Part shown: positions 3,241 to 40,088 of the stretch, piece by piece
How the letters are laid out: each line of letters begins with the position of its first letter
Position numbering within the stretch: position 1 is the first letter of the stretch
Origin: Malacoraja senta
Taxonomy: Eukaryota
Assembly: GCA_038087875.1 (NCBI GenBank)
Contig: CM075981.1
Coordinates: forward strand, 682,001 to 746,000
DNA: 64,000 bases
Direction: 5' to 3'
The notes under the pieces: model-generated
The model's input: the letters and a program-made list of their open reading frames with translations, nothing else
The model's database searches: none
What the model was told of the DNA's origin: nothing
Made by a program: the position numbers and the translations under genes

Positions 3241-3283
3241 TATCACTGCATCTGTACTTCCTTGTGTCTTCCTGTTTCTCAAC

Positions 3284-5822: not shown

Positions 5823-6059
5823 TTTTTTTTTTTTTTTACTGACTTCCGGTGGCGCTATGGAGGCTTGAGTCCAGTGCCAACTAGCTCCGTGCCGAAGAAT
5901 CTGAAAACGGGAGAAAATCGGGTCTTACCTGCAGCGATCGCGATCTGAACGGCTGCCTGCCGCGTGACGTCATCAGGCGCGCGACTTTGATGGTATGTCG
6001 ATGCAACATACCCCCCCCCCCCCCGTGGGCCAAAAAAAACCGTTAAAGGGAAACCACCG

Positions 6060-7060
6060 ATGGAAGAGGTAGGCCTAACTGAGGCCTCGGCCTCAGTTAC
6101 AATGACGGCCCAGGAAGACCCAACGAAGAAATCAAAGCAGAAAAAGTCTGAAATTGAAGATCTAAAACTTTTCTTGCTGTTGAAATTAAACAGATTCAAC
6201 TACAGTTGAAAACCTTCGAAGGAAATTTGAAATTGAATTTTAAAGAGGAACTTAACTCTTTCAAGGAAGATTTTAAAGCAGAAATGGATTCTACCGTTCA
6301 AGAAATACTGGAAGTCTGGAAGTGGTCGAGGGACGATGAGGCCAAGGAACAGATGGAAGTGCTGGAAGCCAGGCTCGTTTCGGTGGAATCGAGCATTAAT
6401 AGGGAGGTGATCCCCATTCATCAAGCACTTGATCAACATAGAACAGCGATAACCGAACTTGAGAAATGGGCGGCGACAAGTGAGGAAACTGTAAATCGAC
6501 TCCTTATTGAAAACCAACGCCTCTCCGGTATGGTGATCAAATTAAGTGATAAGTGTACCGATCTGGAGGGGCGTCAAAGACGCAAGAATTTAAGAATTGT
6601 AGGGATGAAAGAAGGAAGTGAGAGGGAAATGGGCCCTCGGGATTTTGTGGCAGACCTACTACAAAAAGCCTTAAAATTGGATCAGAAACCTTCACTCGGT
6701 CGAGCACATAGAGCGCAGGGGCGTCGTACACAAGATGATGCCCATCCAAGACAAATTATAGTAAAGGTGCAACTTGATCATGAATTTGACGAGATAATGA
6801 AGAAAATTGTCCGAAGCGGACAGCTCTATTTTGAAGGTGCGAGGTTCAGTATTTACCAAGATTATCCGGCAGAGGTCTTCAAGAAAAGAGCGCTGTTCAC
6901 TGAGACAAAAAGAATACTGAAGAAGGTACCTGCATTGAGATACGGCTTGCTTTACCCCGCAAGACTAAGAGTCACCTACAAGTAGAAGGAGCAATTTTTT
7001 ACAGACCACGAAAAAGCACTGGAATTTGCCAAAGAAATCGAGAACGTGACCACAGACTGA
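6060..7060 (+). pseudogene. L1 ORF1 (coiled coil/RRM/CTD), with a frameshift near 6165 and a premature TAG at 6983-6985
   Basis: DLEGRQRRKNLRIVG, RAHR, IYQDY, LLYPARLRVTY motifs. Confidence 0.92.
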
Positions 7061-7670
7061 AGAATTTGCATTACTCCTCAGGAGTCAAGGATTAATGGGA
7101 CTTCGCCAGATTTAAAAGGACCTTTAAAGTTCTTTTAAGAGCTTTAAGGACATTCGAAAACTGAAATGGACGGTGGACATTGGAGAAAACCGTGGTTTTT
7201 TATTTTTTAATCTTTTTTTATTTTTAGTATCAACTCTAAGAACAATAATATCATAGTTACGACCAATTGTTATTAATCACTATTACTATTTAGTATATTC
7301 ATATCTAACTATATATGTAACTACTAATACTTATTAAATATCTATATTATTACTAAAATTATTAACATCTATATTACTCATAAAAATTTAATACTAGGTA
7401 TGATTGATAACAATGATCAATAACTAAAAGTCTCTGGTTAACGTAGAAATGAGTTACATACTTATATTCTGTAGGAATATGTGCAAGAGGTAATTCAGCC
7501 TACGTCATAATAAGGTTTGACGGTTTTTCTCTTTATTTTTCAATTTAAAATTAAATTTATAGATTTAGCGAAGATATTAATACGGTATGTAGAGAATAAT
7601 AACGTTGTGAATTTATGCTGTTTTTGGACTTTTCTGCAGGGATATGTGCATATATATGTATGCATATGGG

Positions 7671-7671
<1 letters not shown>

Positions 7672-7723
<52 letters not shown>

Positions 7724-7742
7724 ATGTATGTGTATATATATA
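7672..7742. repeat. (TA)n/(TG)n microsatellite in the L1 inter-ORF spacer (also ~40037-40107)
   Basis: Direct inspection. Confidence 0.95.
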
Positions 7743-8119
7743 TGTTTGCTACTCCCAAAGAAGTTAATTGATTGTCAGAAATATTCATTTTTTTTTTCTC
7801 GGGCACGGAGCTGGGATTTTTTTTTTACAAAGGCTACGGAAGTCTTTAGAATTCTAGCCACGTTAGTGTGGCTATCACTAACTACACTAATTGTAGATGT
7901 AGTTTTTTTTCTTTCACCCTATACTAACCAATTCTATCACTTTTTTCACTTTAAATATTTTTATAACAATGTTTGAATGGAACAACAAGACTAATTCAAG
8001 GAGATGTGTTCGGAAGAGCGATGTATATTATTTAAAATTCATCTATTTGAGGTTCGGGAGCAGGGTCAGGTTTTATGTGTTGCACCTTCTGCTCGGTTAT
8101 AGACCACCTTAGAAACAAT

Positions 8120-11100: not shown

Positions 11101-11921
11101 TTACATTTCAGGAGTTGCAACAGACTTATGGATTTCGAGGAAATGATTTTTTCAGATATCTTCAACTCAGAGATTATGTAAAATCGAATACTCAAAATTT
11201 TCGAATTAGAAATTCAGAAATTCTTGATGAATGTTGGAATAAACATCCTAATACAGAAAAATTAATATCATATATATATAATATTTTATTAGACAGTAAC
11301 ATTCCATCGACGGACTTACACAGACAAACATGGGAAAAAGAATTAAATCAAATAATAACGAAAGATACTTGGGAAGAAAGTTTACAACACATACATCAAT
11401 GTTCATTAAATGCCAGATATTCTTTAATACAATTTAAAGTAATACATAGGTTACATTATTCAAAAACAAAATTACATAAAATCTTTCAACATATCTCACC
11501 TATATGTGATAAATGTCAACATTTAGAAGCTAACTTATCTCATATGTTTGCAAACTGTATAAAAATAAAAAAATTCTGGGTAAATATTTTCAGTATAATA
11601 TCTAAAGTGACCAGCACACAATTGGACCCGGATCCAAAACTAATAATACTCGGAACATTAGAATTAAATCAAACATTTACAACAACACAAAGACACTTTA
11701 TTGATTATAGTATAATAACGGGAAAAAAATTAATTCTAAAATTTTGGAAAGGCCCTATAACCCCCACAATCAAAATGTGGATTATAGAAATGACGGAGAC
11801 CTTAAATGTGGAAAGAATCAGATTTGCCCTGTTGGACAAACAGGAATTATTCGTTGGAACATGGTCTCCCTTTATTGATTATTTAAAGGGTCAGAATGGT
11901 TCAGCACAAGAACCTGACTAG
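8120..11921 (+). pseudogene. L1 ORF2 (APE endonuclease, RT, CCHC), several stops and frameshifts
   Basis: SWNVKG, FLQETH, GGDFN, GPDG, QGCPLSP, YADD and CDKC...H...C motifs spread over fragmented ORFs. Confidence 0.95.
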
Positions 11922-12241: not shown

Positions 12242-15200
12242 TGTTTTTCTCATCTCAGTCCTAAAAGATTTCCCCTTTATCCTTAAACTGTGACCCCTTG
12301 TTCTGGACTTCCCCAACATCGGGAGCAATCTTCCTGCATCTAGCCTGTCCAACCCCTTAACAATGTTGTAAGTTTCTATAAGATTCCCCCTCAATCTTCT
12401 AAATTCTAGCGAGTACAAGCCGAGTCTATCCAGTCTTTCTTCATATGAAAGTCCTGACATCCCAGGAATCAGTCTTGTGAACCTTCTCTGTACTCCCTCT
12501 ATGGCAAGAATGTCCTTCCTCAGATTAGGAGACCAAAACTGTACGCAATACTCCAGGTGTGGTCTCACCAAGACCCTGTACAACTGCAGTAGAATCTCCC
12601 TGCTCCTATACTCAAGTCCTTTTGCTATGAATGCTCACATACCATTCGCTTTCTTCACTGCCTGCTGCACCTGCATGCCTACTTTCAATGACTGGTGTAC
12701 CATGACACCCAGGTTTCGTTGCATCTCCCCTTTTCCTAATTGGCCACCATTCAGGTAATAGTCTACTTTCCTGTTTTTGCCACAAAGTGGATAACCTCAC
12801 ATTTATCCACATTATACTGCATCTGCCATGCATTTGCCCACTCACCCAGCCTATCCAAGTCATCTTGCAGCCTCCTAGCACACTCCTCACAGCTAATACT
12901 GCCTGCCAGCTTCGTGTCATCCGCAAACTTGGAGATGTTGCATTCAATTCCCTCGTCCAAATAATTAATATATATTGTAAATAGTTGGGGTCCCAGCACT
13001 GAGCTTTGCGGTACCCCACTAGTCACTGTCTGCCCTTCTGAAAAGGACCCGTTTACTCCTACTCTTTGCTTCCTGTCTGCCAGCCAGTTCTCTATCCACA
13101 TCAATACTGAACCCCCAATACCGTGTGCTTTAAGTTTGTATATTAATCTCTTATGTGGGACCTTGTCGAAAGCCTTCTGAAAGTCCAGATATAACACATC
13201 CACTGGTTCTCCCTTATCCACTCTACTAGTTACATCCTAGAAAAATTCTATAAGATTCGTCAGACATGATTTACCTTTCATAAATCCATGCTGACTTTGT
13301 CCAATGATTTCACCATTTTCCAAATGTGCTGCTATCCCATCTTTAATAACTGACTCTAGCAGTTTCCCCACTACCGATGTTAGACTAACTGGACTGTAAT
13401 TCCCCGTTTTCTCTCTCCCTCCATTTTTAAAAAGTGGGGTTACATTAGCTACCCTCCAATCCTCAGGAACTACTCCAGAATCTAAAGACTAATCTTTCTC
13501 ATAGCCTACATGTTACCCTGGCCTGTTCCTACATCAAAACTAACTTAAAAATATCCATTGACCTTGCCTCCACACCCCTGCAATTTATCTGCAATAAATA
13601 GCTACATTAACCATATTACCTGATACAGCACCCCAAGTATTGTATAAGGATTGTATAATCACTTGCTTTTAGGATAGAATTATGCCAAACAGCAGAACTG
13701 GTTTTGTTTAAAAAGCTGTTTATTAACAAACATATTTTATTGGTTAACCTAAGCTGCTCTTGTCATTAGAGGTGAGAACAGTAATTAGTGATCAATTGAT
13801 ATAATAACCAGATGGGTCTTTCAAAAGCATCGTGTGATAGGAAAGATGTTGTCTAGCTGGAAAGGATACAGAGAAGATTTATGAGGATGTTGCCAGGATT
13901 ACATGGTCTGAGCTATAGTGAGGTTGAGTAGGCTGGGATTCTATTCCTTGGAGCGCAGAGGATGAGGGGTGATCTTATAGAGATGTATAAAATTACAAGA
14001 GGAATAGATTGGGTAGATGCACAGTGTCACTTTCCCCAGTGCAGGTGAATCGGGGACCAGAGGACATAGGTGTAATGTGAAGGGGAAAAGATTCAATAGG
14101 AATCTGAGGGGTAACTTTTTCACAGAAAGGGTGGTGGGTATATGGAACAAACTGCCAGAGGAGGTAGTGAGGCAGGGACTATCCCAATGTTTTAGATACA
14201 GTTAGATAGGGTACTTGGATAGGACAGGTTTGGAGGGATATGGGGCAAATGCGAGCAGGTGGAACTGGCCTGGGACATGTTGGCTGGTGTCGGCAAGTTG
14301 GGCAGAAGGGCCTGTTTCCACACTGAGTCACACTATGACTCTATGTGTATAGCAATTATTTTGGAAAAGAACTTCATGAAAGCATTTGAAGGGATTTCTA
14401 CTGTAAAACCAAGGTAATGTGTGTGTGTCTGAGGGTGAATCCAGAAGTTAACCCTCACTCTTGTTTAGGGAGTTTGTACGTTCTCCCCGCCTGGGTTTTC
14501 TCCGAGATCTTCAGTTTCCTCCCACACTCCAAAAACGTATCGGTTAGTTGGTTAGTTGGCTTGGTATAAGTATAAATAGTCCCCAGTGCATGTAGGATGT
14601 TAATGCGTGGGATCACTGTTCGGTGCGGACTCGGTAGGTGAAGGGCCAGTTTCCACGCTGTATCTCTAAACTAAACTAAACTAGTTTAGGTTTAAGAAAG
14701 AACTGCAGATGCTGGAAAAAACGAAGGTAGTAAAAAATGCTGGAGAAACTCAGCGGATGAGGCAGCATCTATGGAGCGAAGGAATAGGTGATGTTTCGGG
14801 TCGAGATCCTTCTTCAGACTGATGTGGAGGTGGGGGCGGGAGGCAGGAAGAAGAACGGAAGCGAAGGTGACAGTAGGCTGTGGGAGAGCTGGGAAGGGGA
14901 GGGGAAGGAGGGAGAAAGCAAGGACCACCTGAAATTGGAGAAGTCAATGTTCATACCACTGGGGTACACTACATATAGTAACTACACTACTACTAGTGTA
15001 GGTGGGCAGTTTGGTCAGCATGGTCAAGTTGGGAAGAAGGGCCTGTTTCTGCACTATATGACTCTATGAGTTTAACTCTGGTGCCAGTGTCCCACCCTGC
15101 TCTGCCCCACTCACCCTTCACCCTGGCACTGTGACATGTGGGTGGATTTGGACTTGACCATGGTTCTCCACACCTCACAGATCTGATAACCCACCCTGCA

Positions 15201-16000
15201 TACTGTCATAACAACCCTAACCCGTGGAACCAATGATTTGGTTTCAAAATATTTACACTGTTGTTCAAATCTTCTTATCAACCTCACAACTTCCTATTTC
15301 TCAAAAACAGACATATAATGCTGGAGTAACTCAATGGGTCAGGCAGCATCTCCAGAGAACATGGATAGGTGACGTTTTGGGTTCGGACCCTTCTTCAGGC
15401 TGATTGTAGTAGGGGGGAGAAAGCTGGGAGAGAGGTGGGGGAAGGATGAAGCCTGGCAAGTGATAGGTGGATACAGGTGAGGGAGAGAGGGTTACTGGCT
15501 GATGGGTGGACGAAGGCCAGAGATGGAAAGAAGATAAAAGGCTGTGAGATGGTGATATGAGATATGGAAGAGGCATGAAATGTGAAGCTGGAAGAAAGGA
15601 TATATATATATATATATAGATGTGGAAAGGGACGGAGATTAGTGGAAAAGATTGTTGTGGGTTAATTACTTAAAACTAGAAAATTCAATGTTCCCACCAT
15701 TGGGTTGCAATCTACTCGAGCGGACTATCAGATATCACTGCATCTGTACTTCCTTGTGTCTTCCTATTTCTCAACCTATTTTGTTGTGAGTTGCTCACAT
15801 TGTGTTGTCACACTGCTACACTGGTGATGGAGAGGCTTGTTCTGGGTGATATTTGTGGGGTTGGGTTTGCTGTAGGTGGAACTGCAACCACCCCCAGAGA
15901 CCCCAGTTGGATTCTGACCTCCGGCGCTATCAGTGTGGAGTTTGCACGTTCTCCCTGTGACCGCGTGGGTCTCCTCTGGGTGCTCCGGTTTCCTCCCACA
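12242..16000. repeat. Older internal duplicate of 1-~3500 (offset ~12512, ~2% diverged); begins with the CR1 remainder 12242-~13490(-)
   Basis: ORFs 251/12763, 2192/14692 and 3299/15791 are paralogous; about 14 differences in the first 700 bp. Confidence 0.93.
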
Positions 16001-17133
16001 TCCCTAATACATGCGAGTTTGTAGGTTAAATACCTCTGCAAGATTGTCGCAAATGTGTAGGGAATGGATGAGAAAGTGGGATAACAGAACTAGTGTATAC
16101 ATGTAGACAAAAATGTCAGAGAAACTCATCGTTTTTGTCTACCGCTTTTCCAGCATCTGCAGTTTCTTCTTAAACATAGTGTGTACAGGTGATCAATGGT
16201 CGGCATGGACTCGGTGGGCCAATGGGCCTGTTTCCATGCGGTATCTATAAACCAAACTAATTCTACCCTTATCACTTATGATCTTATGACAAAAATTCAG
16301 CATCTTTTATTACATTGGATTATTTTAATCATTATTCAATGTGCAGGGTTTTACACAACAATTCAATTGGTAGTAAAGTTAAAAGTTCACATTCTGGAGA
16401 GCCTGCTTTGAGTTCTAGTCTATGTACTGCTGTCTTTTGGGTGAATGTCAGGATGTACAGACGTGTCTGCAAACATAGGTACAGAATTCAGCCATTTTCT
16501 CCATCGAGTCTACTCCGCCATTCAATCATGGATGATCTATCTTTCCCCCTCCATCCCATTCTCCTGCCTTCTCCCCACAACTTTTGTCACCCTGAGTAAA
16601 CCTGTCAATCTCCAATTTAAAAATATCCATTGACTTGGCCTCCACAGCCATCTGTGGCAATGAATTCCAACAGATTCATCACCCTCTGGTTAAAGAAATT
16701 CCTCCTCAAGTGGTCAAGTTAGATTGGACATAGGTGGGGTGTGGTGATGCTGTAGGGTCAAGGTGATGAGATTTGTCCATCTGCAACTGGTGAACACCCT
16801 CTTTGGCCCTGAAAAGCTAAACGATGATTATTGGACGTCATTCCATCAGAACAACAATATTGATATAACGATTACCCTTAATTTTTATCTTATTGTTCTA
16901 ACGCGTGTCCAAGTTCAATACTTGTAATCATGTAACCATTTTTATATCCCCATTGCTCAATGGTTCAATGGTACTTGATTGTCTCATGCACATGGGTACA
17001 GTGAAATTTCTTTTGCATAGAATTCAGTACAAATCTTACTTTATATAAGCACAGCTGAAGCTAAGAACAAGATTGTATTAATAGCAGATTATATGATACA
17101 GTACACTAGAGTTGCCACATTTCTGGCAGTATC

Positions 17134-17140
17134 TTATATT
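17134..17140 (-). CDS. Gene 1 candidate terminal coding exon (R-I-stop), followed by putative 3'UTR
   Basis: tttaag|A ATA TAA is phase 2 and compatible with the TM exon; the paralog at 59494-59500 reads A AAA TAA with the stop in the same place. Alternative: 16448-16466 (R-H-V-C-T-S-stop). Confidence 0.5.
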
Positions 17141-17828
17141 CTTAAACATCAAATTGATAAAAAAGTATTGTCATATTTTGGGCTTAAAGTCTCGTTGTCG
17201 TGGGGACTGCACTGGGTGGGAGTTGCAGGGGTCGGCCTGGCCTGGCGATGTTGTTGGTGCCTCCACCGCCGCTCCGTGCCGCTGCAGGACGTGTCCGCTC
17301 CGCACGCTCGTCCCCGACCTCTGTGGGGCCTCCAGCGGCACCCGATCCACCGGCTGCTGCAGGGCCTCCAGCAGCCCACTCGCACTCCGCCCACACCTCG
17401 ACCAACCAACGCACCCTTTTCCCCTCACCTCCCACGCCGTCTCCCAGCCAGCTCACCGGCACTGTTCTTCTCCTCCCTCCACCGCTGCCGACCCCATCTC
17501 CAACATCTCGGCTGTTTTTTTCCTTGAATAACAATTAAAACGCAGTTTATAATCTCTACCATCAAATTTTACCCGAGGAAATGACCCAGGGCGGCACAGT
17601 GGCGCAGCGGTAGAGTTACTGCCTTACAGCGCCAGAGACCCGGGTTTGGCGCTGTAAGGCAGCGTGGGTTTTATCCGGGTGCTCCGGTTTCCTCCCACAA
17701 TCCAAAGACGTGTAGTTTTGTAGGTTAATTGGCTTCTGTATAATTGTAAATTGTCCCTCATGTGTAGGATAGTGCGAGTGTACGGGGTGATCATTGGTCA
17801 GCGCGGATTTGGTTGGCTGTAGGGCCTA

Positions 17829-20017
17829 CAGTGCCCTCCATAATGTTTGGGACAAAGACCCATCATTTATTTATTTGCCTCTGTACTCCACAATTTGAGA
17901 ATAGTAATAGAAAAAAAAATCACATATGTTAAAGTGCACATTTTCAGATTTTTATACATTTTGATTTCACCAGGTAGAAATTACAGCAGTGATTATACAT
18001 AGTCCAGTTCAGGGCACCATAATGTTTGGGACACAACAATGTCATGTAAATGAAAGTAGTCATGTTTAGTATTTTGTTGCATATCCTTTGCATGGAATGA
18101 ATGCCTGAAGTCTGAGATTCATGGACATCACCAGTTGCTGGGTGTCTTCTCTGGTGATGCTCTGCCAGGCCTGTATTGCAGCCATCTTTAGCTTATGCTT
18201 GTTTTGGGGGCGAGTCACCTTCGGTTTTCTCTTCAGCATATAAAAGGCATGCTCAATTGGGTTCAGAATGACTTGGCCACTCAAGAATTGACCATTTTTT
18301 AGCTTTGAAAAATTCCTTTGTTGTTTTTGCAATATGTTTGGAATCATTGTCTTGCTGTAGAATGAACCGTCAACCTCTAGCAGATAGGATGTCTCTATAC
18401 ATGTCAGAATTCATTATGCTACTACCATCAGCAGTTGCATTACCAAGGAAGATAAATGGGTCAGTACCTTCAGCAGCCATACATGCCCAGGACATAACAC
18501 CGCCACCACCGTGTTTCACAGATGAGGTGGTATACTTTAGATCTTGGGCAGTTCCTTCCCTCCTCCATACTTTGCTCTTGCCATTACTCTGATATGTTAA
18601 TCTTACATAGGTACATAGATACATAGAAAATAGGTGCAGGAGTAGGCCATTTGGCCCTTCGAGCCTGCACCGCCATTCAATATGATCATGGCTGATCATC
18701 CAACTCAGTATCCCGTTACCTGCCTTCTCTCCATACCCCCTGATCCCCTTAGCCACAAGGGCCACATCTAACTCCCTCTTAAATATAGCCAATGAACTGG
18801 CCTCAACTACCCTCTTTGGCAGAGAGTTCCAGAGATTCACCACTCTCTGTGTGAAAAAGTTTTTCCTCATCTCGGTCTTAAAGGATTTCCCCCTTATCCT
18901 TAAGCTGTGACCCCTTGTCCTGGACTTCCCCAACATCGGGAACAATCTTCCTGCATCTAGCCTGTCCAACCCCATAAGAATTTTGTACGTTTCTATAAGA
19001 TCCCCTCTCAATCTCCTAAATTCTAGCGAGTATAAGCCAAGTCTATCCAGTCTTTCTTCATATGAAAGTCCTGACATCCCAGGAATCAGTCTGGTAAACC
19101 TTCTCTGCACTCCCTCTATGGCTATAATGTCCTTCCTCAGATTTGGAGACCAAAACTGTACGCAATACTCCAGGTGTGGTCTCACCAAGACCCTGTACAT
19201 CTCATCTGTCCACAAGACCTTTTTCCAGCACTGTGGTTGCTCTTTTAAGTACTTCTTCGCAAACTGTAAGCCGGCCATCCTACTTTTGCGGCTAACCAGT
19301 GGTTTGCATCTTGCAGTGTAGCCTCCGTATTTATGTTCATGAAATCTTCTGCAGACAGTGGTCATTGACAAATCCACGCCTGACTCCTGAAGAGTGTTTC
19401 TGATCTGTCGGACAGGTGTTTGGGGTTTTTTTTTTTATAGAGATAATTCTTTTGTCATCTTGGCCTGATGTTTTCCTTGGCCTGCCATTCCCTTTGCGAT
19501 TAGTAAGCTCACCAGTGCTCTCTTTCTTCTTAATGATGTTCCAAACAGTTGATTTTGGTAAGCCTAATGTTTGGCTGATGTTTCTAACAGTTTTATTCTT
19601 GTTTCTCAGTCTCAGAATGGCTTCTTTGACTTTCATTGGCACAACTTTGGTCCTCATGTTGATAAACAGCAATAAAAGTTTCCAAATGTGATGGAAAGAC
19701 TGGAGGAAAGACTAGGTGCTGAGAGCTTTCTTATCCCTGCATTGAGGAGGCAATTAAACACACCTGAGCAATTACAAACACCTGTGAAGCAATGAGTCCA
19801 AAACATTATGGTGCCCTGAAATGGGGGGACTGTGTATAAACACAGCTGTAATCTCTACATGGTGAAACCAAAATGTATAAAAATACCCTTTAATAAAATC
19901 TGTCCATGTGCACTTTCACCACATGTGATTTTTTTCTATTACAAATCTCAAATTGTGGAATACAGAGGCAAATAAATAAATGAAGGGTCTTTGTCCAAAA
20001 CATTATGGAGGGCACTG
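17829..20017 (-). mobile_element. Tc1 (IR/DR type) DNA transposon, defective, containing a CR1 insertion
   Basis: TA target duplication, CAGTGCCCTCCATAATG termini, ~210 bp inverted repeats with an inner CCATAATGTTT direct repeat, transposase motifs VLWTDE, QQDNDSKH, NPIEH. Confidence 0.95.
18605..19199 (-). mobile_element. 5'-truncated CR1 inserted into the Tc1 transposase
   Basis: YRVLVRPHLEYCVQFWSP...RKNFFTQRVVNLWNSLP; acatag tail repeats; splits transposase between TDE and KIN. Confidence 0.93.
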
Positions 20018-20115
20018 TATGTCCACACTTTATCTCCAGAATTCTAAAGTAAATTCCCATCATTTCCAATTGAATTTAATGTCATCACCAGAGTGAAGAG
20101 ATTACAAACTTTTAC

Positions 20116-20223
20116 CTTTTAAAAGTTGTCACACAGCTGATGGAAACCGGGAAGAGAAGCAGAACTCCAAAGAGTACCCAGCGTGACACACCCCAAACAC
20201 GGCGAACATTCAACACGATGTCC
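20116..20223 (-). CDS. Gene 1 transmembrane exon (108 nt, phase 2 to 2): RDIVLNVRRVWGVSRWVLFGVLLLFPVSISCVTTFK
   Basis: ttccag| acceptor, AAAAG|GTAAAA donor, hydrophobic helix containing Arg; phase-compatible with the stalk exon. Confidence 0.88.
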
Positions 20224-21148
20224 CTGGAAATCCAAGGAAATATTATTACTTCCACACAGAGTTATCAAAGATCAACGCTGGGAGATTATTTCCATCATAT
20301 TGCACACGGAATCATTCAGTGTGATCCAAGGTTGTGGCGTAGACATTGGTAAGATGTTTATATCGCAACATGCACCCATTCCTTGGAGGTGTTCCATGAC
20401 TACATACATTGACAACTTAGATGTTCATGTTGGTGGTCAGACATAGAGCATGAAAACATGTCCTTGGACCTAATTTCCCCACGCCGACCAAGATGTCCTT
20501 ATCGACACTATTCCCATCTGCCGGCCTTAGATGTTATTGTTGGAAGTATGATTAACGTGTTTACAGATTACACCAAAATTGTAGCATTTTGGATAGTACG
20601 ATAATCATAGACCACAGAGGGATAAGAAGCAACTGGTATGTTGGGCAGAGCAATGCCAGCCGGTATTGAACCATGATAAGTGTGAAGTTATTTGTTTTTG
20701 GCATCAAATAAGGGTAGACATTCACAATGGTAGGGCCACTGGGTGTACTAAGGACAGAGGGACTTTAATCAAGGCCAATGACTATTTATCAATGGACTGG
20801 AATGTGATCAGCCACGCTTTCTCAAAGTACTGGGCATGATTTTACTAACAATAGGATACGATCCTACCGGACTACTGGTGCTGTCAGTACATAGTTTGTA
20901 TGTTCTCCCTGTGATCACAAGAGTTTACTCTGGGTTCTCCAGTATCCTCCCACATTCCAAAGACATGCCGGTTTGTAGTAAATTGCCCCTAGTATGTAGA
21001 ACAGAACTAGTGTATGGGGTGATCGCTGATCAGAGCGGACTCGGTGGGCCAAAGGGTCCATTTCCACGCTGTATCTTTTAACTGAGCTGAACTGAACTTA
21101 ACTAATTTGTTCTCAGGTGAGGCTGAGTTGGCTCTTCGAGTTACTAAC

Positions 21149-21233
21149 CTGTTTGGAGGTGTTGAACCAAGAGACTCAGTGGAACTTGCTGCCTCGGTGG
21201 TGATGATCATATCTGGGCGGCTTGTTTGAGACC
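21149..21233 (-). CDS. Gene 1 stalk exon (85 nt, phase 1 to 2): GSQTSRPDMIITTEAASSTESLGSTPPN
   Basis: ctttatctccacaag| acceptor, AACAG|GTTAGT donor, S/T-rich; bridges V (phase 1) to TM (phase 2). Confidence 0.87.
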
Positions 21234-22550
21234 CTTGTGGAGATAAAGTGAATGAAGTTTTTGAACATTAAATGTCTGAGAGCACGTCCTGTGCCTCTTT
21301 AGTGAGGTGTGGGAGATGCCTCAGTTGGGAATGCTCTTGCTCTGTGTGGGGAGATTCCTGGGTTCAAATCCGACTCCACACATTTGGGCAAAGATCCTTC
21401 TGAGGCCACCATAGATGGACCAAGCCTCTTGATCTAGACAGGAGGCTCACCCATTAAGATGCCACCGGATGGTCGCAAGCATTCATTGACTTCTTTCATG
21501 CCCTTCAGAGTCCCACAGGCTGTGTTGTCTGCCTGCTGCTGGAGTTAGGCAAGTGTCTTCTACGTTGGAGAAGAACTTGGGAGTGGGAGGATCCATGGAC
21601 TATTTTCATTACGTGGACTGAATTGAAAATAATGCAATTTGGTTGGAGGTATCTACCTGAAACATTAAGTCTCGTCTCTCTCCATAAATGCTGCCCGACC
21701 CGTTGAGTATTTCATCTTGTACAGTTTGTGTGGCTCAGTGTAAAGTCTATATCACTCACATCATGCGGATTCTTAGTTCATAAGTTCATAAATAATAGGG
21801 GCAAAATTAGGCCATTTGGTCCATTGAGTCTACTCCGCCATTTAATCATGGCTGATCTATCTCTCCCTCTCAACCCCATTCTCCTGCCTTCTCCTCATAT
21901 CGCTTGACATGCGTACTAATCAAGAACATGTCAATCTCCACTTAAAATACCCAATGACTTGGCCCTCATTGGAAACATGGTAAAAGCTTTTCCCTGTACC
22001 TCAGTACAGGCGACAACAATAAACTGAGCTCATGAATCACCATAGTTTGTGAGACACAAGGAATTGCAGGTGTTGGAATCTTGAGCAATACACAAAGTGC
22101 TGGAGTAACTCAGCAAGTCAGGCAGCATCTGTGGATGGAATGAATAGACGATGTATAGGCTTGGGACCCTTCTTCAGATGTTGTGTGTGTGGTGGGTGTG
22201 ACATTGACGGGAAGGGGGAGAGGGTGAGGGGGTGGTTCCACCCCCCCTGCTCCAGTGAGGGGGCACCAGAGGTTCTGGTCCCGGAGAGATCGTGTTTGGG
22301 GAAATGAACCGTCAGCAGCAGGACCGCCGGTCCCCATTGATGAGATCCCCCCCACCCCCCACACTGCTCCTGGGACAGTGGGATCTTGGTGTGGCCCCAT
22401 GCAGCGGGTCCCCACTACCCCCCCTCACCTCCCCCCAAACTCCACCCCCCCCACGGACCCCCGGGGATGTGGCACCGTCAGGACCGAGGCCGGGAAATCC
22501 CAGGCTGGAATTTTCACATCTGGGGGAGTGAGGAGAGATCGTCAACGTAC

Positions 22551-22874
22551 CTTCAGAAACCTTCAATGAGATGGAGGTCTTTTCAATGAATGACAATATT
22601 CCCTTTCCTATCACACACCAGTAGCGTCCTTCATCACTCTTCTCCAGGTTGTTGATGGTTACTGAAAGTATCTGTTCTGTTTTGTTATCAGTCATCGATG
22701 TTCCCCCTTGTCGTGGGTGATCAGTAGAAACCACGGTAGATGATTTCCAGTAATCATCACCTTTACTCCATAGCTTCCTGTTGTCACTGTATTCCTGATC
22801 ATATGGACATTCCACAGTGACCGACTGCCCCAACTCTCCCCTCACCTCCTCGGGTCCAGTTATTCCCCATGACC
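22551..22874 (-). CDS. Gene 1 Ig V-type domain exon (324 nt, phase 1 to 1), CD300/pIgR/TREM-like (MDIR-like)
   Basis: cccacag|GG acceptor, GAAG|GTACGT donor; GITGP..V.G.LGQSVTVECPY, LW, LSVTINNLEKSDEGRYWC; NKT sequon. Confidence 0.94.
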
Positions 22875-23029
22875 CTGTGGGCACATTAATGATGAAAGAT
22901 CACTCACACTGCAGCAACACAAGCTGAGGTTTAACAATAAAAAACATGTCATTTGTGCTGTTCAGACAGGTTCATGGTTTCGCATAGATCATGTGCAGCA
23001 AGGGACTGCAGGTGCTGGTTTACACCAAA

Positions 23030-23170
23030 GATAGACACAAAGAGCTGGAGTAACTCAGCGGGGCAGCCAGCATCTCTGGAGAAACCGACAGGTGATGTTC
23101 CCTCACCCATTCCTTCTCTCCAGAGATGCTGCCCGTCCCGCTGAGTTACTCCAGCATTTTGTGTCTCTCT
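23030..23170. repeat. Fold-back hairpin of inverted PLE-derived termini (similar at ~23440-23640 and in gene 2 intron 1)
   Basis: gctggagtaactcagcggg...catctctggagaaa and ttctctccagagatgctg...cccgctgagttactccagc are reverse complements. Confidence 0.8.
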
Positions 23171-24852
23171 TCTTTTGCATAGAACCTGTTGCACTTTAAT
23201 GCTTTTCCCGCAGGTGTTAATTCCCATTTCACCGGGATTGTTCCCCAAGTTCCAGTGAAAGCAGAAGTGCTTCTGAATCTACCTGGCGCCCGGATCATCC
23301 TTCCCTGTGGGCGTGGCTTGACCTGAGTGGTGGTCATGTGACAGGAAGCCAAACCTGTCACTCACTCTGACCCACCCTGTGTTCAATCTCACTACAACCC
23401 ACTTCCCCATTGAACAAGTAGAAACAAGGAACTGCAGATGCTGGTTAATACTCAAAAGGACACAAAGTGCTGGAGTAACTCAACGGGTCAGGAACTATCT
23501 CTGGAGAAAGTGGAATTCTCTGGGTGAAAAGGTTTTTCCTCATTTGAGTCCAAAATGGCCTACCCCTTATTCAGGTCTCAACCGTAAACGTCACCTATCC
23601 ATGTTCTCCAGAGATGCTGCCTGACCTGCTGACTTACTGGTATGGTATGGTATATGGACACACTGATTTGTTTTGTAGTAAATGCCTACTATGTTCTGTG
23701 TGCTGAAGCAAAGCAAGAATTTCATTGTCCTATCAGGGACACATTACAATAAACTCACTTGGACTTGAACTTGAACTCCAGCACTTTGTGCTTTACTAAA
23801 GCTGAATAGGCAGCTGCCTGTGATGCCTCAGCAGGTCAGGCAACATCGCTGGAGAACATGGATATGTAATGTTACAGGTAGAGACATGGTGGCACAGTGG
23901 CACAGGGGTAGAGTTGCTGCCTTACAGCGCCAGAGACCCGTGTTTGATCCTAACCTCGGGTGCTGTCTGTACGGAGTTTGTACGTTCTCCCCGTGACAGC
24001 GTGTGCTTTCTCCAGTTTCCTCCCACACTCCAAAGACATGCAGGTTTGTAGGTTAACTGGCTTATGTTAAAATTGTAATTTGTTCCTCGTGTGTAGGATA
24101 GTGTTACTGTGCCATGTGATCGATGGTCGGCGTGGACTTTGTGGGCCAAAGGGCCTGTTTCCGTGCTGTATCTCTAAAGTCACTAAAGGAAAGTCACCAA
24201 GTGATGCAGCTTGACCTGCAGTGTTACTCCAGCACTTTGTGTTTTACTAAATCTGAATAGCCAGTGGTGACTCAGCAGGTCAGGCAGCATCTGTGGAGAA
24301 CATGGATAGGTGACGTTTCAAGTCAAGACCATGAGATACTGCCTGACCTACTGAGTTACGCCAGCACTTTGTGCCCCATTGAACTAAACTTCCCGGCCTG
24401 AGGTGGAAGCTGGATCTGCCACTGATGTTTCAAACTCCACGTCCACCTGGAATAATCATGAGGTGTCTTTTTCACACAAAGTCTGGTCGGTGTATGGATC
24501 AAGCTGCCAGAGGAAATAGTTGAGGCAAGGACTATCCCATCATTTAAGAAACAGTTGGACAGGTACATGGATAGGACAGGTTTGAAGGGACATGTACCAA
24601 ACGTAAACAGGTGGGACAGGTGTTACTGAGACATGTTGGCCGGTGTGGGTAAGTTGGGCCGAAGGGCCTGTTTCCACACTGTATCACTATGACTCTAACA
24701 CATGTGAAACTCTGCAGATTCAGGAGCTGGGGTGGAGACACATCATCAGATCAGTCCAGGTCCGAACTCAGAGGCTGGGGAAAGCACGGTGTGAAGAACA
24801 GCTCGAGCAGCAGAGTCTGTTGTAAGGAAGCTGGCTTTTCTCAGAGTGGAGA

Positions 24853-25062
24853 TGTAGAGCCGTGCATGTTCCTTTAACATGGTGACCTCACTTCTACTAA
24901 CCACTCCCCATTAGCTTCAGTATAAATGTAACCTTCCCACCCCTAGCTCGCTCTCTAGCTCCGGTAACGGACCACGAACAGCTAGGGCAATATGTGTGTA
25001 TACGAATACAATGTATGCAATAAACTAGAGTGAAGACACCATGTGTTTGGACAGTCTTTACA
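24853..25062 (+). mobile_element. 210 bp solo LTR in gene 1 intron 1
   Basis: TG...CA ends, GAGA 4-bp target duplication (24849-24852 and 25063-25066), TATAAA at 24921, AATAAA at 25019; empty site in gene 2 near 57243. Confidence 0.8.
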
Positions 25063-25300
25063 GAGAGATTACCACAACTTCTCCAAATGCTAAATTGGAC
25101 AGTCACTCTGGTGCTTCCTCATTTGAGATGCCCGCCTGTTCCCATCGGCTGGCTTTCACAGGTTTTTTCTTTGAATATGCTAAGGTTTAGGTTCAACATT
25201 TCCCATTGCAGTGCGTGGAGGGAGTGCCGTGTGTCTTTGATAGACACTAAATGCTGGAGTAACGCAGCGGGTCAGGCGGCATCTATGGAGAGAAGGAATG

Positions 25301-25334
25301 GGTGACGTTTTGGGTCGAGACCCTTCTTCAGACC
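25301..25334 (-). ncRNA. Best-preserved minimal hammerhead ribozyme motif (paralog 57472-57505)
   Basis: GGT-CTGAAGA-A-GGGT-CTCG-ACCC-AAAA-CGTC-ACC: stems I and II and palindromic ACGT stem III intact; G12 changed to A. Confidence 0.65.
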
Positions 25335-25539
25335 GAGTGTCGGGGGGTGGAGGAAGTCAAGAGATATGCAAGAGGTAAGGCGTGAAAACGACAGAACAAA
25401 GCAGATGGTGATAAGGAAATGTAGATCGCAGAGCCGGAGAGCAGGAGGAATCACAGAGGGGGAACAGCGAGGGAGGGTGTTGCAGAATTCTCGTCGGGTA
25501 GAAGAGGAGAACTTCTGTCCCAGGCTAACTGAACCACAC

Positions 25540-25790
25540 CAAAAGTCAGAGAGTCGTTGGTTCAACTCCCACTCCCGAAGCTCGAGGACAGAGGGAGTGC
25601 GGTACTGAGGGGAATCACCACTGCTGGAGGTGATGTCACTTTGCCGAGGCATTTAGCTGATCTGCTGTCTGCTCTCTCAAGTCACTGAGAAAGTTCACCT
25701 GTAGATAGTTTGCACCAGAATAGTGGAGCAAACTATCTGTTCTGGGGCCAAGAGTTACCCCTACACCCAAGATCAACAGGGCCAGCTGCG
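25540..25790 (+). mobile_element. Possible ancient DeuSINE/SacSINE-like remnant
   Basis: ggttcaactcccactcc...gagggagtgc...actgctggagg resembles that family as I recall it; highly degenerate. Confidence 0.35.
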
Positions 25791-26170
25791 GACTTTAATT
25801 CTCAGGCTGCGGCCTCTGGTCCTAGACTCTCCCATTAATGGAAACATCCTCATCCCATCCACTCTATCCAGGCCTTCATTATTCGGTATTAAACATTAAA
25901 CTTCATTATTCGGTAAGTTTCAATGAGGTCCACAAGGCCAGGCAAGCTCTAGATGGTTATCTCCCTTCTCCACAGGGAGCTAGCTGTGTGCGATTTGGCT
26001 GCACACAACACGACAACAGCCGCTGATGGAAGTCTCTACAGGAACTAACGAGTGTTAAGCAATTGATCATCAGCTCCCCACACAGTACAGAGAAGTCCTC
26101 GGTTACAAATAATTCAAGGCGCTGGTAAATAATTCTAAAGAACAGAGCATTTTGTAAAACAACGATTTAC

Positions 26171-26267
26171 CTGGTGTGAGACCAACAGCGACAAGAACCA
26201 GCAGAGCGACTGTTCCCCTGGATCTGGGCCGTTTCTGGTGGGTGAATTCTCCCTGTCCCACCGCCAT
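26171..26267 (-). CDS. Gene 1 leader exon (97 nt): MAVGQGEFTHQKRPRSRGTVALLVLVAVGLTP
   Basis: Kozak gacATGG, hydrophobic core, CCAG|GTAAAT phase-1 donor matching the V acceptor; conserved in gene 2. Confidence 0.88.
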
Positions 26268-26299
26268 GTCTCGGCTACGTTGGATCGGTTTGGTCCCTG

Positions 26300-26420
26300 C
26301 ACTGCGTTTGAGTTGTCCTCTTCCTCATTCACAACAGAAGTCAAACAGTCAATTTCCGTTTACTCAGGAAACGACTTTGCAGTGGTTCGAGACTAACTTG
26401 GTGACTCACTTGCCACCTCC
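26300..26420 (-). promoter_or_regulatory. Putative proximal promoter of gene 1 with Ets/PU.1-like GAGGAA (26321-26326) and AP-1 TGACTCA (26402-26408)
   Basis: Short motifs just upstream of the leader ATG in a block conserved between paralogs; motif matches alone are weak evidence. Confidence 0.3.
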
Positions 26421-27899
26421 CCCAGCCTCCTCACCACGGACAATGCACCTATCAGGAGTGCGCTGCAACGCTCTCCTGTTGCCTGGATTGGAGCATCTCC
26501 TCGAAGCTCTGCTTCATCCTGGTGACATTTGCCCACTTGACTGGCGCTCTGTCCGCCACTGCAAACATTCCCTTGCCCACCCCCTCAACCCCCTCCCCCA
26601 AATGCAGGCACACTGTGTCCGAACTTGAATGGGGTTAGGAGGCAGAGATCAGCCATGTTTGAATGGCGGAGTAGACTCGATGGGCCGAATGGCCAAATTC
26701 TACTCCTGGAATGTGTGAACTTTTTCACACAGAGAGTTGTGAGTCTGTGGAATCCTCTGCCTCAGAGGGCGGTGGAGGCAGGTTCTCTGGATACTTTCAA
26801 GAGAGAGCTAGATAGGGCTCTTAAAGATGGCGGAGTCAGGGAAATGGGGAGAAGGCAGGAAAGGGGTACTGATTGTGGATGATCAGCCATGATCATATTG
26901 AATGGCAATGCTGGCTCGAAGAGCCGAAAGGCCTACTCCTGCACATATTGTCTATTGTCTATTGCCAAACGCGATCAGATAAGTCAACTCACGTCACCAG
27001 ATAAACTCCTTGAAGGACAATTCACATATTTGAGCATCGGAGACCGGGTAAAGCTTAGTTTGAGGATGTGATTCATAAAATCATAGAGTGATACAGCACG
27101 GAAACAACTTGCCCTATGCCGATCAAGATGTCCCATGTACGCTAGTCCCTCTTTAGTTTAGTTTAGTTTAGAGATACAGTGCGGAAACAGGCCCTCCGGC
27201 CCACCGTGTCCGCACCGTCCAGTGATCCCCGCACATCAACACAAATGTTTACATTTACACCAACCCAATTAACCTACAAAGCTGTTCATCTTTGGAGTGT
27301 GGGAGGAAACTGAAGTTCTCGGAGAAAACTCATGCAGGTCACTGGGAGAAAGTACAGACTATGTACAGACAAGCACCTGTAGCCAGGATCAAACCCGGGT
27401 ATCTGGCGCTGTTATACAATGTAAGGCAGCAACTCTACGGCTGCGCCACCGTAAAAATCAGGCCTTTGTTTGACCCCTGTCCCTACAAACCTTTCCTATT
27501 CACGTACCATGTCCTAATGCTTTTAAATGTTGTTAATAGTACCTGTCTCCACTAGCTCCTCTGGACATGTTCCTTCCATATACCCATCAGCTTCTGTGAG
27601 ATAACATTGTTGAGGTAGGATTAGGGTTGTGTGAGGGAGAAGACAAAGGAGATTGCATATACTAGAATCTGGAACAATAGGCAGAACACCTGAAAAACTC
27701 AACGGGTCAGGCAGCATCTGTGGAGGCAAAAAGTGCATGTTTGTATTCCGGCCGAGACACTACTTCGGGCTGAGGGTAAAAAATGGATATTTACCAATAT
27801 ATGAGGAGATGGGTCAAATGCGGGCAAGTGGGACTAGTGGACTAGGGTGGCGCAGTGGTAGAGCTGCTGCCTTACAGCGCTTACAGACAGGTTCGACTG

Positions 27900-30800
27900 T
27901 TAGACAGACTACGGGTGCTGTCTGTATGGAATTTGTACATTCTCCCTGTGACCGCCTGGGTTTTCTTCGAGATCTTCATTTTCCTCCCACACTCCAAAAA
28001 TATAGGTTTGTAGGTTAGTTGGCTTGGAACAGCTGTAAATAGTCCCTAGTGCGTGTAGGATAGTGTTAATGCGTGGGGATTGCTGTTCGGTGCGGGCTCG
28101 GTGGGACGAAGGGTCAGTTTCCACGCTGTATCTCTAAACTAAACTATTGTGGGTAAGCAGTTTGGTCAGCATGGTCAAGTTGGGAAGAAGGGCCTGTTTC
28201 TGTGCTATATGACTCTATGAGTTTAACTCTGGTGCCAGTGCCCCGCCCTGCTCTGCCCCACTCACCCTTCACGCTGGCACTGTGACATGTAGGTGGATTT
28301 GGATTTGACCATGGTTCTCCACACCTCACAGATCTGATAACCCACCCTGCATAGTCATAACAACCCTAACCCGTAGAACCAATGATTTGGTTTCAAAATA
28401 TTTACACTGGTGTTCAAATCTTCTTATCAACCTCACAACTTCCTATTTCTCAAAAACAAACATATAATGCTGGAGTAACTCAATGGGCCAGGGAGCATCT
28501 CCAGAGAACATGGATAGGTAACGTTTTCGGTTGGGACCCTTCTTCAGGCTGATTGTAGTAGGGGGGAGAAAGTTGGGAGAGAGGTGGGGGAAGGATGAAG
28601 ACTGGCAAGTGATAGGTGGATACAGGTGAGGGAGAGATGGTTATTGACTGATGGGTGAACGAAGGCCAGAGATGGAAAGAAGATAAAAAGCTTTGGGATA
28701 TGGAGAGAAGAGGCATGAAATGTGAAGCTGGAAGAAAGGATATATATAGTTGGAAAGGGATGGAGGTTAGGGGAAAGGATTGTTGTGGGTTAATTACTTA
28801 AAACTAGAAAATTCAATGTTCCCACCATTGGGTTGCAATCTACCCGAGCAGACTATCAGATATTACTGCATCTGTACTTCCTTGTGTCTTCCTGTTTCTC
28901 AACCTATTTTGACGTGAGTTGCTAGCATTGTGTTGTAACACTGCTACACTGGTGATGGAGAGGGTTGTACTGGGTGATATTTGTGGGGTTGGGGTTGCTG
29001 AAGGTGGAACTGCAACCACCACCAGAGACCTAGGTTCAATTCTGACCTCCGGCGCTATCGGTGTGGAGTTTGCACGTTCTCCCTGTGACCGCTGGGTCTC
29101 CTCTGGGTGCTCCGGCATCCTCCCACATCCCCAAAACGTGTGGCTCTGTAGGTTAATTGGCCCTCTTGTCGAATTGCACTCAATGTGTAGGGAGTGCATG
29201 CAAAAGCGGTGTAACGTGGGACTAGTGTGAACAGGTGATCGATGGTCAGCGTGGACTCGGTGGGCCGAAGGGTCTGTTTCCATGCTGTATCTCGAACCAG
29301 CATGTGATTCGATGCCAAATTCCACCTGACAATGGTGCTGTGAAGAACCTCGAGACTTTTCCAGCACCTTTAATGCACTGTTGAAATGCAAGTTGCAATG
29401 CAAAATGAAATTATTGCAAAGAATTGCTCAATAAACCTTTAGTCAGAGGGTGATGAATCTGTGGAATTCTTTGCCACAGAGGCTGTCAGTGGATATTTTT
29501 AAGGCAGAGATAGAGAGATTCTTAATTAGTTCAGGTGTCACGGGTTATGGGGAGAAGGCAGGAGAATGGGGTTAGGAGGGAGAGATGGATCAGCCATGAT
29601 TGAATGGCGCAATAGACTTGATGGGCCGAATGGCCTAATTCTACTCCTTTCACCTAAGAACTTATGACAAAATTCAGCCATCTTCATTTACATTGGATTA
29701 CTTTAACCATTATTCAAAGTGCAGCATTTTACACGGCAATTCTATTGGTAATAAAGTTAAAAGTTCACATTCTGGAGAGCCAGCTTTGAGTTCTAGTCTA
29801 CGTACTGCTGTCTTTTGGGTGAATGTCAGGATGTACAGAAGTGTCTGCAAACATTGGTGCCTTTTTGAGGCAGCGACTCCGATAAATAAAATGTTTGGAG
29901 CTGAGTTCCAGAGGTCACCCCTCACCCTGCCACTATGTCCTACAGTGGTATAGGACAGGCAGCACACCCTCCCCACTGACGATCAAGGAGCCTCTGTGTG
30001 GAGATAGATGATCAGATCAATCCAGATCATGTTCATAAGTTATAAGAGCAGAATTAGGACATTCGGCCCATCAAATCCACTCCGCCATTCAATCAATCAT
30101 GGCTGATCTATCTTTCCCTCTCGACCCCATTCTCCTGCCTTCTCCCCATAACCCCCGACACTCGTACTAATCAAGAATCTATCAATCTCCGCCTTAAAAA
30201 TGTCCTTTGACTTGGCCTCCACATCCTTCTGTCGCAATGATTTCCACAGATTCACCACCCTCTGACTAAAGAAATTCGTTCTCATCTCCTTTCTCAAACT
30301 ATGCCCTTTTATTCTGAGGCTAGGGCACAAATTCATCACCCTCTCTCTCAAGGGTGTCTTGGGTGACTTTCCCAGGCTACTTGAGCCACACCATGGGCCA
30401 GCGTAGACATCCAGCAAAAGGTCAGTTTGTGGCAGGGTGTGGTGGAGATGCCCTTCAAAATAAGGGAAGGTATCCCACGCCAGTGGGCCACATGAGTGGC
30501 AAGGGTATGGGGTAAATTTGTGTAATTTGTGTAAACAGTATTGAATGTATGTCTAGCCTCCGAGAATGTCGGATGGAGTTTTGTAAGGATCATGAATTGT
30601 ATATATTTTATTTTTCTAATAAAGTATATTTTGAAATTTAAAAAAACCCGGAGTCAGAGTGTTGTGGGTTCAACTCCCACTCCAGATGCTGTCACTCTGG
30701 CCTGCTGCTCTGCTGTCTGCTCTCGCAAGCCTGCTTTCTCTCTTCAGTGCAGCACGGAGGTGCAGCGGTTAGCTGCTGCCTCACAGCGCCAGAGACCCGG

Positions 30801-31557
30801 GTTTGATCCTGACTACGGGTGCTGTCTGTGTGGAGTTTGAACGTTCTCCCTGTGACCTCGTGGGTTTCCTCCAGGTGCTCTGGTTTCCTCCCACATCCCT
30901 AATCCATGCGAGTTTGTAGGTTAAATACCTCTGCAAGATTGTCGCAAATGTGTAGGGAATGGATGAGAAAAGTGGGATAACAGAACTAGTGTGTACAGGT
31001 AGACAAAAATGCTGGAGAAACTCAGCGTTTTTGTCTACCTTCATGTTCCAGCATCTGCAGTTCCTTCTTAAACATAGTGTGTACAGGTGATCAATGGTCG
31101 GCGTGGACTCGGTGGGCCAATGGGCCTGTTTCCATGCGGTATCTCTAAACCAAGCATAGAAACATAAAAACATAGAAAATAGGTGCTGGAGTAGGCCATT
31201 CGTCGCTTCGAGCCTGCACCGCCATTCAATATGATCATGGCTGATCATCCAACTCAGTATCCTGCACCTGCATCCTCTCCATACCCCCTGATCCCTTTAG
31301 CCACAAGGGCCACATCTAACTCCCTCTTAAATATAGCCAATGAACTGGCCTCAACTACATTCTGTGGCAGAGAATTCCAGAGATTCACCACTCTCTGTGT
31401 AAAAAATGTTTTTCTCATCTCGGTCCTAAAGGATTACCCCCTTTTTTTTTTTTTTTACTGACTTCCGGTGGCGCTATGGAGGCTTGAGTCCAGTGCCAAC
31501 TAGCTCCGTGCCGAAGAATCTGAAAACGGGAGAAAATCGGGTCTTACCTGCAGCGAT
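27900..31557. repeat. Third paralog of the ~1970-5938 block (offset ~25619); diverged to ~29100, near-identical afterwards
   Basis: ORFs 4074/29693, 4478/30097 and 4922/30541 translate identically. Confidence 0.93.

Positions 31558-40035: not shown

Positions 40036-40088
<53 letters not shown>

Follow-up and report, generated by a model that had tools for sequence, protein, structure and literature searches.

Two tandem skate genes as probable activating-type members of the elasmobranch CMRF35-like/pIgR-like receptors

The stretch of Malacoraja senta DNA analysed here, 64,000 nucleotides long and called the window, holds a pair of neighboring genes on its minus strand, A and B. They are probably intact five-exon skate genes that encode 227-aa type-I, activating-type members of the elasmobranch 'CMRF35-like / pIgR-like' paired receptors. 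The predicted receptor would consist of a signal peptide, one V-set domain of the CD300/pIgR type, a short Ser/Thr stalk, a transmembrane helix preceded by an Arg, and a 23-residue tail with no Tyr.

Exon structure of genes A and B

Read directly from the window sequence, gene A lies on the minus strand between 26267 and 17453. Exon 1 (26171-26267, 97 nt) opens with the ATG at 26267, contains the start codon and the signal peptide (MAVGQGEFTHQKRPRSRGTVALLVLVAVGLTP plus 1 nt) and ends in phase 1, with a GT donor after 26171. Exon 2 (22551-22874, 324 nt) encodes the V-set Ig domain, exon 3 (21149-21233, 85 nt) the Ser/Thr-rich stalk, and exon 4 (20116-20223, 108 nt) a membrane-proximal piece and the transmembrane helix (RWVLFGVLLLFPVSISCVTTF), including the Arg183 codon at 20183-20181. 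These four exons, with AG/GT sites at their boundaries and phases 1,1,2,2, form one open frame; the lengths, sites and phases given for them in an earlier note on this DNA proved exact. The same note had called the gene largely invisible among the listed open reading frames, which was overstated, as the V exon lies inside a 190-aa minus-strand ORF. With the corrected exon 5 (17453-17522), placed by homology to related skates and encoding the cytoplasmic tail RKKTAEMLEMGSAAVEGGEEQCR up to a TGA stop at 17455-17453, the protein is 227 aa long and not 206 aa. No further V exon was detected within gene A by tblastn. The leader of gene A equals that of Amblyraja radiata P0002 in 33 of 33 residues, and the promoter-proximal stretch upstream of it (26268-26574, minus strand) is common to gene B (58569-58875, 96%) and to the A. 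radiata genes.

Gene B (58568-49819, minus strand) is an intact tandem copy with the same five-exon architecture, and the second intact copy claimed in the earlier note was thus borne out. Its leader exon (58472-58568) carries P32S relative to A, and its V exon (54916-55239) differs from that of A by 16 nt and 11 aa, while the stalk (53515-53599), transmembrane (52482-52589) and tail (49819-49888) exons are identical to those of A. Altogether the two proteins show 12 residue differences, and both genes are intact throughout, in their ten exons as well as at every splice site.

Tandem duplication, selection and expression

The duplicated block spans 1-24764 and is repeated at 32366-57130, with a divergence of ~0.1% up to ~22,400 and of ~4% from there as far as 24,764. 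The change in divergence coincides with a G-rich tract of the V-stalk intron; genes A and B have ~99.9% identity downstream of the intron and ~96% upstream of it. The common part at ~99.9% identity comprises the stalk, the transmembrane segment and the tail, along with 17 kb of DNA downstream, with the V/leader halves ~4% apart. A very recent exchange may have left this pattern in the gene pair, in a process where recurrent exchanges would shuffle ectodomains onto signalling modules, a reading that we offer tentatively and consider unlikely.

The earlier description of an expanding family agrees with the tandem pair found here, with a tandem array of at least three family genes in A. radiata and with the lineage-specific clusters of the V-domain tree. 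Only family members and transposable elements were found in the window and in the A. radiata locus examined. The part of a third copy that had also been claimed came down to 660 bp of the gene's 3' flank (58882-59541, minus strand, matching 16491-17181 at 87%). Relaxed blastn and tblastn of 58.6-64 kb returned this flank copy and transposon matches only, and detected no leader, V, stalk, transmembrane or tail exon in 58.9-64 kb.

Sequencing runs matched to 16900-22899 showed equal depth on unique intron and exon and no gene-specific splice joints. Because introns are covered as evenly as exons, the runs holding gene A sequence behave as DNA and lend no transcript support. Between A and B, the V exon has a dN/dS of ~1.5 (13.5 replacement against 2.5 silent changes), no different from neutrality (P about 0.29), and we rejected positive selection on this exon; its divergence was 4.9%, compared with 4.1% in the adjoining intron. 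One or both copies might be unexpressed, or be young pseudogenes in which the recency of the duplication alone accounts for the open frames, an explanation that agrees with the neutral ratio and with the DNA-like behavior of the runs examined. Moreover, as the 3' halves are near-identical (~0.1% difference), the fact that one copy is intact is a poor guide to selection on it. We nevertheless regard this as quite improbable: not one of the ten exons or of their splice sites is damaged, the promoter-proximal 300 bp, the leader and the transmembrane segment are 92-100% conserved with A. radiata, and the V domain retains every framework residue.

There is also little chance that gene B is an assembly artefact, in which two haplotypes were set in tandem, or a repeat was first collapsed and then re-expanded in tandem. 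The 99.9% identity across 22.4 kb would fit such an origin, and the DNA runs gave no copy-number calibration, but the window has no gap and the upstream contexts of the two units differ beyond 26574 and 58875. In addition, the ~4% that separates the V/leader halves comes with indels and exceeds the allelic variation elsewhere in the block, and the same tandem arrangement is present in A. radiata. Two intact genes in a real tandem duplication is the reading that we follow.

The last exon and the V domain

Thorny-skate and little-skate proteins put the tail exon of gene A at 17522-17453 by homology. A. radiata P0002 (246 aa) and Leucoraja erinacea P0004 align to gene A exon by exon, tail included, and the annotated P0002 gene range ends at the position of the gene A stop codon. 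The earlier note had placed the tail at 17140-17134 on the minus strand, where an AG at 17142-17141 would be followed by Arg-Ile-stop only, for a protein of ~206 aa. This acceptor is legal and in the right phase, and the stretch homologous to the relic 3' flank at 58882-59541 starts at 17181, a short way upstream of it. However, the 70-nt exon at 17522-17453, which lies 380 bp upstream of the proposed tail, encodes a sequence identical to the annotated A. radiata tail at 17 of 23 residues and similar to the L. erinacea tail, and its stop is at the same position in four genes from three species. Moreover, the usable acceptor nearest after the transmembrane exon would normally be used first. We therefore hold a last exon starting after 17141 to be highly improbable, and dropped it for the exon conserved in related skates.

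The V domain of gene A has the core residues C55, W68 and C119, the motif SDEGRYWC and one NKT sequon at N96, and gave a Pfam V-set match of 7e-13. Its best PDB sequence matches were CD300lf (1e-15), CD300a (3e-10), TREM1/2 (~1e-5) and NKp44 (6e-4). The AF2 model of the domain (pLDDT 93.8, eight strands) had mouse CD300lf as its top Foldseek match (TM 0.90, 33% identity), followed by IREM-1/CD300f, pIgR D1, CD300a and TREM2; among solved structures, CD300lf leads pIgR D1, CD300a, TREM and antibody V domains by both sequence and fold. In the protein searches every named relative was 'CMRF35-like' or 'pIgR-like', and the best matches were CMRF35-like/CD300 proteins and not an unrelated Ig family. 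The V-domain tree placed A and B as sisters in a skate-only clade, inside an elasmobranch clade that stands next to the bony-vertebrate CMRF35-like domains and apart from the pIgR domains of birds and axolotl. The Pfam V-set match, the identity to A. radiata CMRF35-like proteins and the CD300lf matches in sequence and fold agree with the single-V, type-I CD300/pIgR-like receptor that had been proposed, and support genes A and B as predicted CD300/pIgR-like V-domain receptors.

The polymeric Ig receptor (pIgR) has four or five tandem V domains in tetrapods and two in teleosts, and a long tail with sorting signals. That gene A is a true pIgR gene has almost no probability, since, for all the low summed multi-domain E-values to human pIgR (1e-30) and the name 'pIgR-like' borne by its relatives, it encodes one V domain and not four or five, its 23-residue tail has nothing of the long pIgR cytoplasmic tail, its per-domain scores to pIgR (~2e-5) are far weaker than that to CD300lf, and the bird and axolotl pIgR domains stand apart in the tree.

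Among the other single V-domain innate receptors, a likeness that the window genes share with TREM/NKp44 and TIM, TREM and NKp44 use a charged transmembrane residue and DAP12; their matches were much weaker than that of CD300lf. The TIM V domain has six Cys, and its FG loop holds a metal-ion-dependent site for ligand binding. We rejected the TIM family, as the V domain of the window genes has two Cys only and neither the 60 sequence matches listed nor the 50 listed fold matches include a TIM chain.

The C-C' disulfide (W-C-x7-C) is absent from the V domain of gene A, which has S69 and S77 at the two positions. Its Cys pair is kept in the consensus of 41 relatives and is absent in skate members and in some shark members. 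This disulfide marks the V domains of CD300, pIgR and TREM; the window genes have Ser/Ser instead.

Transmembrane arginine, relatives and the receptor family

The hydropathy peak of protein A covers residues 185-203, and R183 is located at its outer edge, two residues before the hydrophobic core, where it could be a flanking residue and not a buried one. Conservation of R183 extends from sharks to skates, within a (L/F)RWxLF motif, and the combination of (L/F)RW(V/I/L)LF and a short tail is seen again in skates, Narcine, Hemitrygon and the shark Scyliorhinus. The tails of sister proteins in the family are ITIM-like (VxYxxV). Because of the conserved transmembrane Arg and the short tail, which is free of Tyr, we read the products of genes A and B as activating-type; at the level of sequence, these features mark them as the putative activating form, with the ITIM-bearing relatives as candidate partners.

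For genes A and B we infer expression and the following ligand binding and adaptor pairing. The V domain would bind a ligand, which by analogy with CD300 may be a lipid or a different surface pattern. Signalling would come from an ITAM adaptor of the DAP12/FcR-gamma type, an acidic residue of which would pair with the membrane Arg. Relatives that resemble A and B in the V domain but have ITIM tails would counteract this adaptor signal.

The proteins from other skates that we compared are automatic gene models, namely the RefSeq models 'CMRF35-like molecule 3' of A. radiata (P0002, P0001) and 'polymeric immunoglobulin receptor-like' of L. erinacea (P0004). Compared with the window genes, they have an identical or nearly identical leader, 72-76% identity in the V domain and the same stalk motif, and they have in common with them the transmembrane segment with Arg, RRVWGV.RWVLFG, and the tail KRK(K/R)TAE..EQ.R. 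The gene span (~8.8 kb) and the tandem arrangement match as well. On the other hand, the stalk of the window genes is shorter, without a Ser/Thr-rich piece of 19-24 residues, they have one V domain compared with three in P0004, and in the tree their V sequences group with each other as sisters.

Mammalian CD300 receptors likewise combine one V-set domain with a mucin-like stalk and a transmembrane segment, and mouse CD300lf/CLM-1 is the closest solved member. The window genes share with the CD300 group the split leader, the single phase-1 V exon, the Ser/Thr stalk and the transmembrane segment, and by architecture activating members such as CD300b/c/e are the nearest in mammals. Moreover, both CD300 and the skate family include paired forms, one with a charged transmembrane segment and short tail and one with an ITIM tail.

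The modular domain immune-type receptors of skate, or MDIRs, reportedly include one form with a charged transmembrane residue, and their domain numbers are said to run from one to six. The MDIR1-5 cDNAs are those of Raja eglanteria. We set the MDIRs beside the window genes, which have a V domain alone, by description only, and no protein named MDIR was present among the matches of the V-domain protein searches. PMC3031540 cites Cannon et al. (2006) for the MDIRs of clearnose skate and gives the accessions ABC86796, ABC86797 and ABC86799.

Related skates already have annotated orthologous members of this family, which means that genes of the kind have been described before; the family stands there under automatic names, and the pair reported here are ordinary new members. 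What they provide for the CD300-like paired receptors of cartilaginous fish is two correctly modelled, apparently unannotated members, with the last exon corrected. If exchanges between copies recur at the G-rich tract, they would be a germline way of diversifying receptors, in a lineage that is also without the C-C' disulfide. The family as a whole bears on the origin of activating/inhibitory innate receptor arrays before sharks and bony vertebrates diverged, a picture in which genes A and B alter nothing. The transmembrane Arg conserved from sharks to skates and the second disulfide lost in skates are useful details for studies of the family.

Exon structure and tail of gene A

The window is vertebrate DNA rich in transposable elements and contains no assembly gaps. 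On its minus strand, exons 1 to 4 of gene A, the first of two tandem receptor genes, match exactly those proposed in the earlier note. Exon 1 (26267-26171; 97 nt, phase 1) opens with an ATG at 26267, codes MAVGQGEFTHQKRPRSRGTVALLVLVAVGLTP and is followed by GTAAAT. Exon 2 (22874-22551; 324 nt), flanked by CCCACAG and GTACG, is a complete Ig V exon, while exon 3 (21233-21149; 85 nt) codes a Ser/Thr-rich stalk and exon 4 (20223-20116; 108 nt) codes RDIVLNVRRVWGVSRWVLFGVLLLFPVSISCVTTFK with two bases left over.

The earlier note placed the last exon after an AG at 17142-17141, which gave Arg-Ile-stop, an end at 17134 and a protein of ~206 aa. We replaced this exon because a tblastn search with P0002, a thorny skate (Amblyraja radiata) 'CMRF35-like molecule 3', aligned the tail at 17522-17453. 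The corrected exon 5 (17522-17453, minus strand; 70 nt), with acceptor TTATTCAAG before its first G, codes RKKTAEMLEMGSAAVEGGEEQCR and then TGA. The same tail with the same stop position recurs in two genes at the A. radiata locus on CM021389.1 (L001) and in P0004, a little skate (Leucoraja erinacea) 'polymeric immunoglobulin receptor-like' protein; moreover, the last base of the annotated P0002 gene range aligns with 17453, and both gene A and its tandem partner, gene B, yield uninterrupted 227-aa proteins with this exon. Based on these results we adopted a predicted protein of 227 aa for gene A in place of the 206-aa model. Since the supporting proteins are automatic models, the correction rests on homology, not transcripts.

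Ten bp past the stop codon begins a GC-rich stretch of ~183 bp (17260-17442) that is absent from the A. radiata locus, where the alignment skips from L001 18750 to 18760. The TM-tail intron holds a 335-aa chimeric ORF (18370-19377, and 50736-51743 in gene B) composed of a Tc1/mariner-like transposase remnant and a CR1-type LINE 3' end (RLDRLGLYSLEFRRLRGDLIETYK), at which read depth is thousands of times that of unique sequence.

Identity of the V domain and place in the family

The V exon matched the Pfam V-set at 7e-13. Its nearest database proteins were two A. radiata 'CMRF35-like molecule 3' entries, with V domains 76% and 72% identical and transmembrane (TM) segments 91-95% identical to that of gene A; the leader of one is identical to gene A's. 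Wider searches returned about 1,800 relatives from skates, rays, sharks, paddlefish, caecilians, platypus and one rodent, all the named ones being 'CMRF35-like molecule N' or 'polymeric immunoglobulin receptor-like'. Among solved structures, the best single-domain sequence match was mouse CD300lf (1e-15), followed by CD300a (3e-10), single pIgR domains and TREM1/2 (~1e-5), and more weakly by antibody light chains and NKp44 (6e-4). Congruently, a Foldseek search with an AlphaFold2 model of the domain (mean pLDDT 93.8) ranked mouse CD300lf first (TM 0.90, 33% identity), then human CD300f, pIgR D1, CD300a and TREM2. The CD300/pIgR-like assignment made from motifs is thus supported by sequence and fold. 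CD300 members bind lipids. The domain retains C55, W68, C119 and one conserved NKT sequon, but at the two positions of the second disulfide present in most of the family, 69 and 77, it has Ser.

A V-domain tree of 75 domains and 107 columns, built by a quick search and of limited resolution, placed A and B as sisters (support 94) in a skate-only clade (support 96), itself part of a batoid group. The elasmobranch clade that encloses them all (support 95) adjoins paddlefish, mammalian and caecilian CMRF35-like domains, and bird and axolotl pIgR domains fall outside, although the root was set on one of them. Domains group by species or lineage, as would be expected for birth-and-death or concerted evolution. 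At least three tandem genes ~11-13 kb apart lie at the A. radiata locus, with leaders at L001 10,001 and 20,741. The receptor family is known and already annotated in related skates; genes A and B seem to be new, unannotated members, because their own proteins were absent from the protein collection in both length ranges searched.

In A. radiata P0001 and P0002 and in L. erinacea P0004 the stalk exon carries an extra Ser/Thr-rich piece of 19-24 residues that the window genes lack. The DNA alignment with L001 16112-16375 points to a tandem duplication within the stalk exon, or to a deletion there. The C-terminus of P0001 reads ...VSISCDNF, which looks like the outcome of a frameshift after loss of 2 nt from the TM exon; this paralogue would have no cytoplasmic tail.

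Gene B and the duplicated block

Window positions 1-24764 recur at 32366-57130. Gene B, the second intact copy anticipated by the earlier note, has the same five-exon layout on the minus strand (58568-58472, 55239-54916, 53599-53515, 52589-52482 and 49888-49819) with all splice sites intact, and differs from gene A at 12 residues, 11 of them within the V domain. It appears to be a real second copy, as judged from the assembly structure and the parallel A. radiata arrangement, not from read depth. The supposed part of a third copy turned out to be a 660-bp copy of the gene's 3' flank (58882-59541); no gene exon was found in the last 4.5 kb of the window past it, where transposon sequences lie. 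A 386-aa retroelement ORF with reverse-transcriptase motifs (YLDDVLF) occupies 61176-62336, where a third gene copy would be expected.

Identity between the blocks is uneven. Up to ~22,400 they show ~23 differences in 22.4 kb (0.1%), but over the remainder, which spans the V exon and intron 1 sequence as far as 24,764, they diverge by ~4% (16 differences in the 324 nt of the V exon, 77 in 1,890 of the intron). The intron between the V and stalk exons contains a G-rich tract (22380-22480 and 54750-54850), with minus-strand stretches of five to eight G, at the point where identity switches from ~99.9% to ~96%. Upstream of 24,764, alignment between A and B resumes at 90-96%, takes in the leader and the 300 bp before it, and is then lost entirely. 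These figures mark the V/leader halves as older paralogues and the stalk-TM-tail halves, with their downstream DNA, as products of very recent duplication or homogenisation. The dN/dS between the two V exons was 1.5, which is not significant.

The 32-kb duplication also carries an AT-rich (~30% GC) L1-like LINE that has a coiled-coil ORF1 along with pieces of a reverse-transcriptase ORF (6206-11921 and 38571-44289). Two further repeat sets (1-3614, 12512-16070 and 44879-48467; 2497-5938, 28148-31557 and 34863-38304) consist of 3.4-3.6 kb blocks, 96-97.5% identical, with LINE reverse-transcriptase fragments and strong GC skew. At 20018-20450, where A and B are identical, contigs from two sequencing runs that behave as DNA (X1 and X2) carry mismatches to the window at 7 of 433 intron positions, and none has the window's letters there; another individual or a further copy may be the source of these reads.

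C-terminus and proposed signalling

Hydropathy peaks at residues 185-203 (VLFGVLLLFPVSISCVTTF), with Arg183 a little ahead of this segment and KRKK after it; the tail is devoid of tyrosine. Elasmobranch relatives show two types of C-terminus: one, found in skates, Narcine, Hemitrygon and Scyliorhinus, has a conserved (L/F)RW(V/I/L)LF TM segment and a short tail, and the other an uncharged TM segment and a long tail with ITIM-like motifs (for example VVYSSV, TYMNL and VVYSAV). Receptors such as CD300b/c/e, TREM, NKp44, LILRA and their relatives, in which a short tail accompanies a basic membrane residue (Arg or Lys), pair with DAP12 or FcR-gamma. By analogy with them, we propose with moderate confidence that the gene A protein would pair with DAP12 or FcR-gamma through its membrane Arg and short tail. 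The presence of these two C-terminus types matches what is typical of paired activating and inhibitory receptors.
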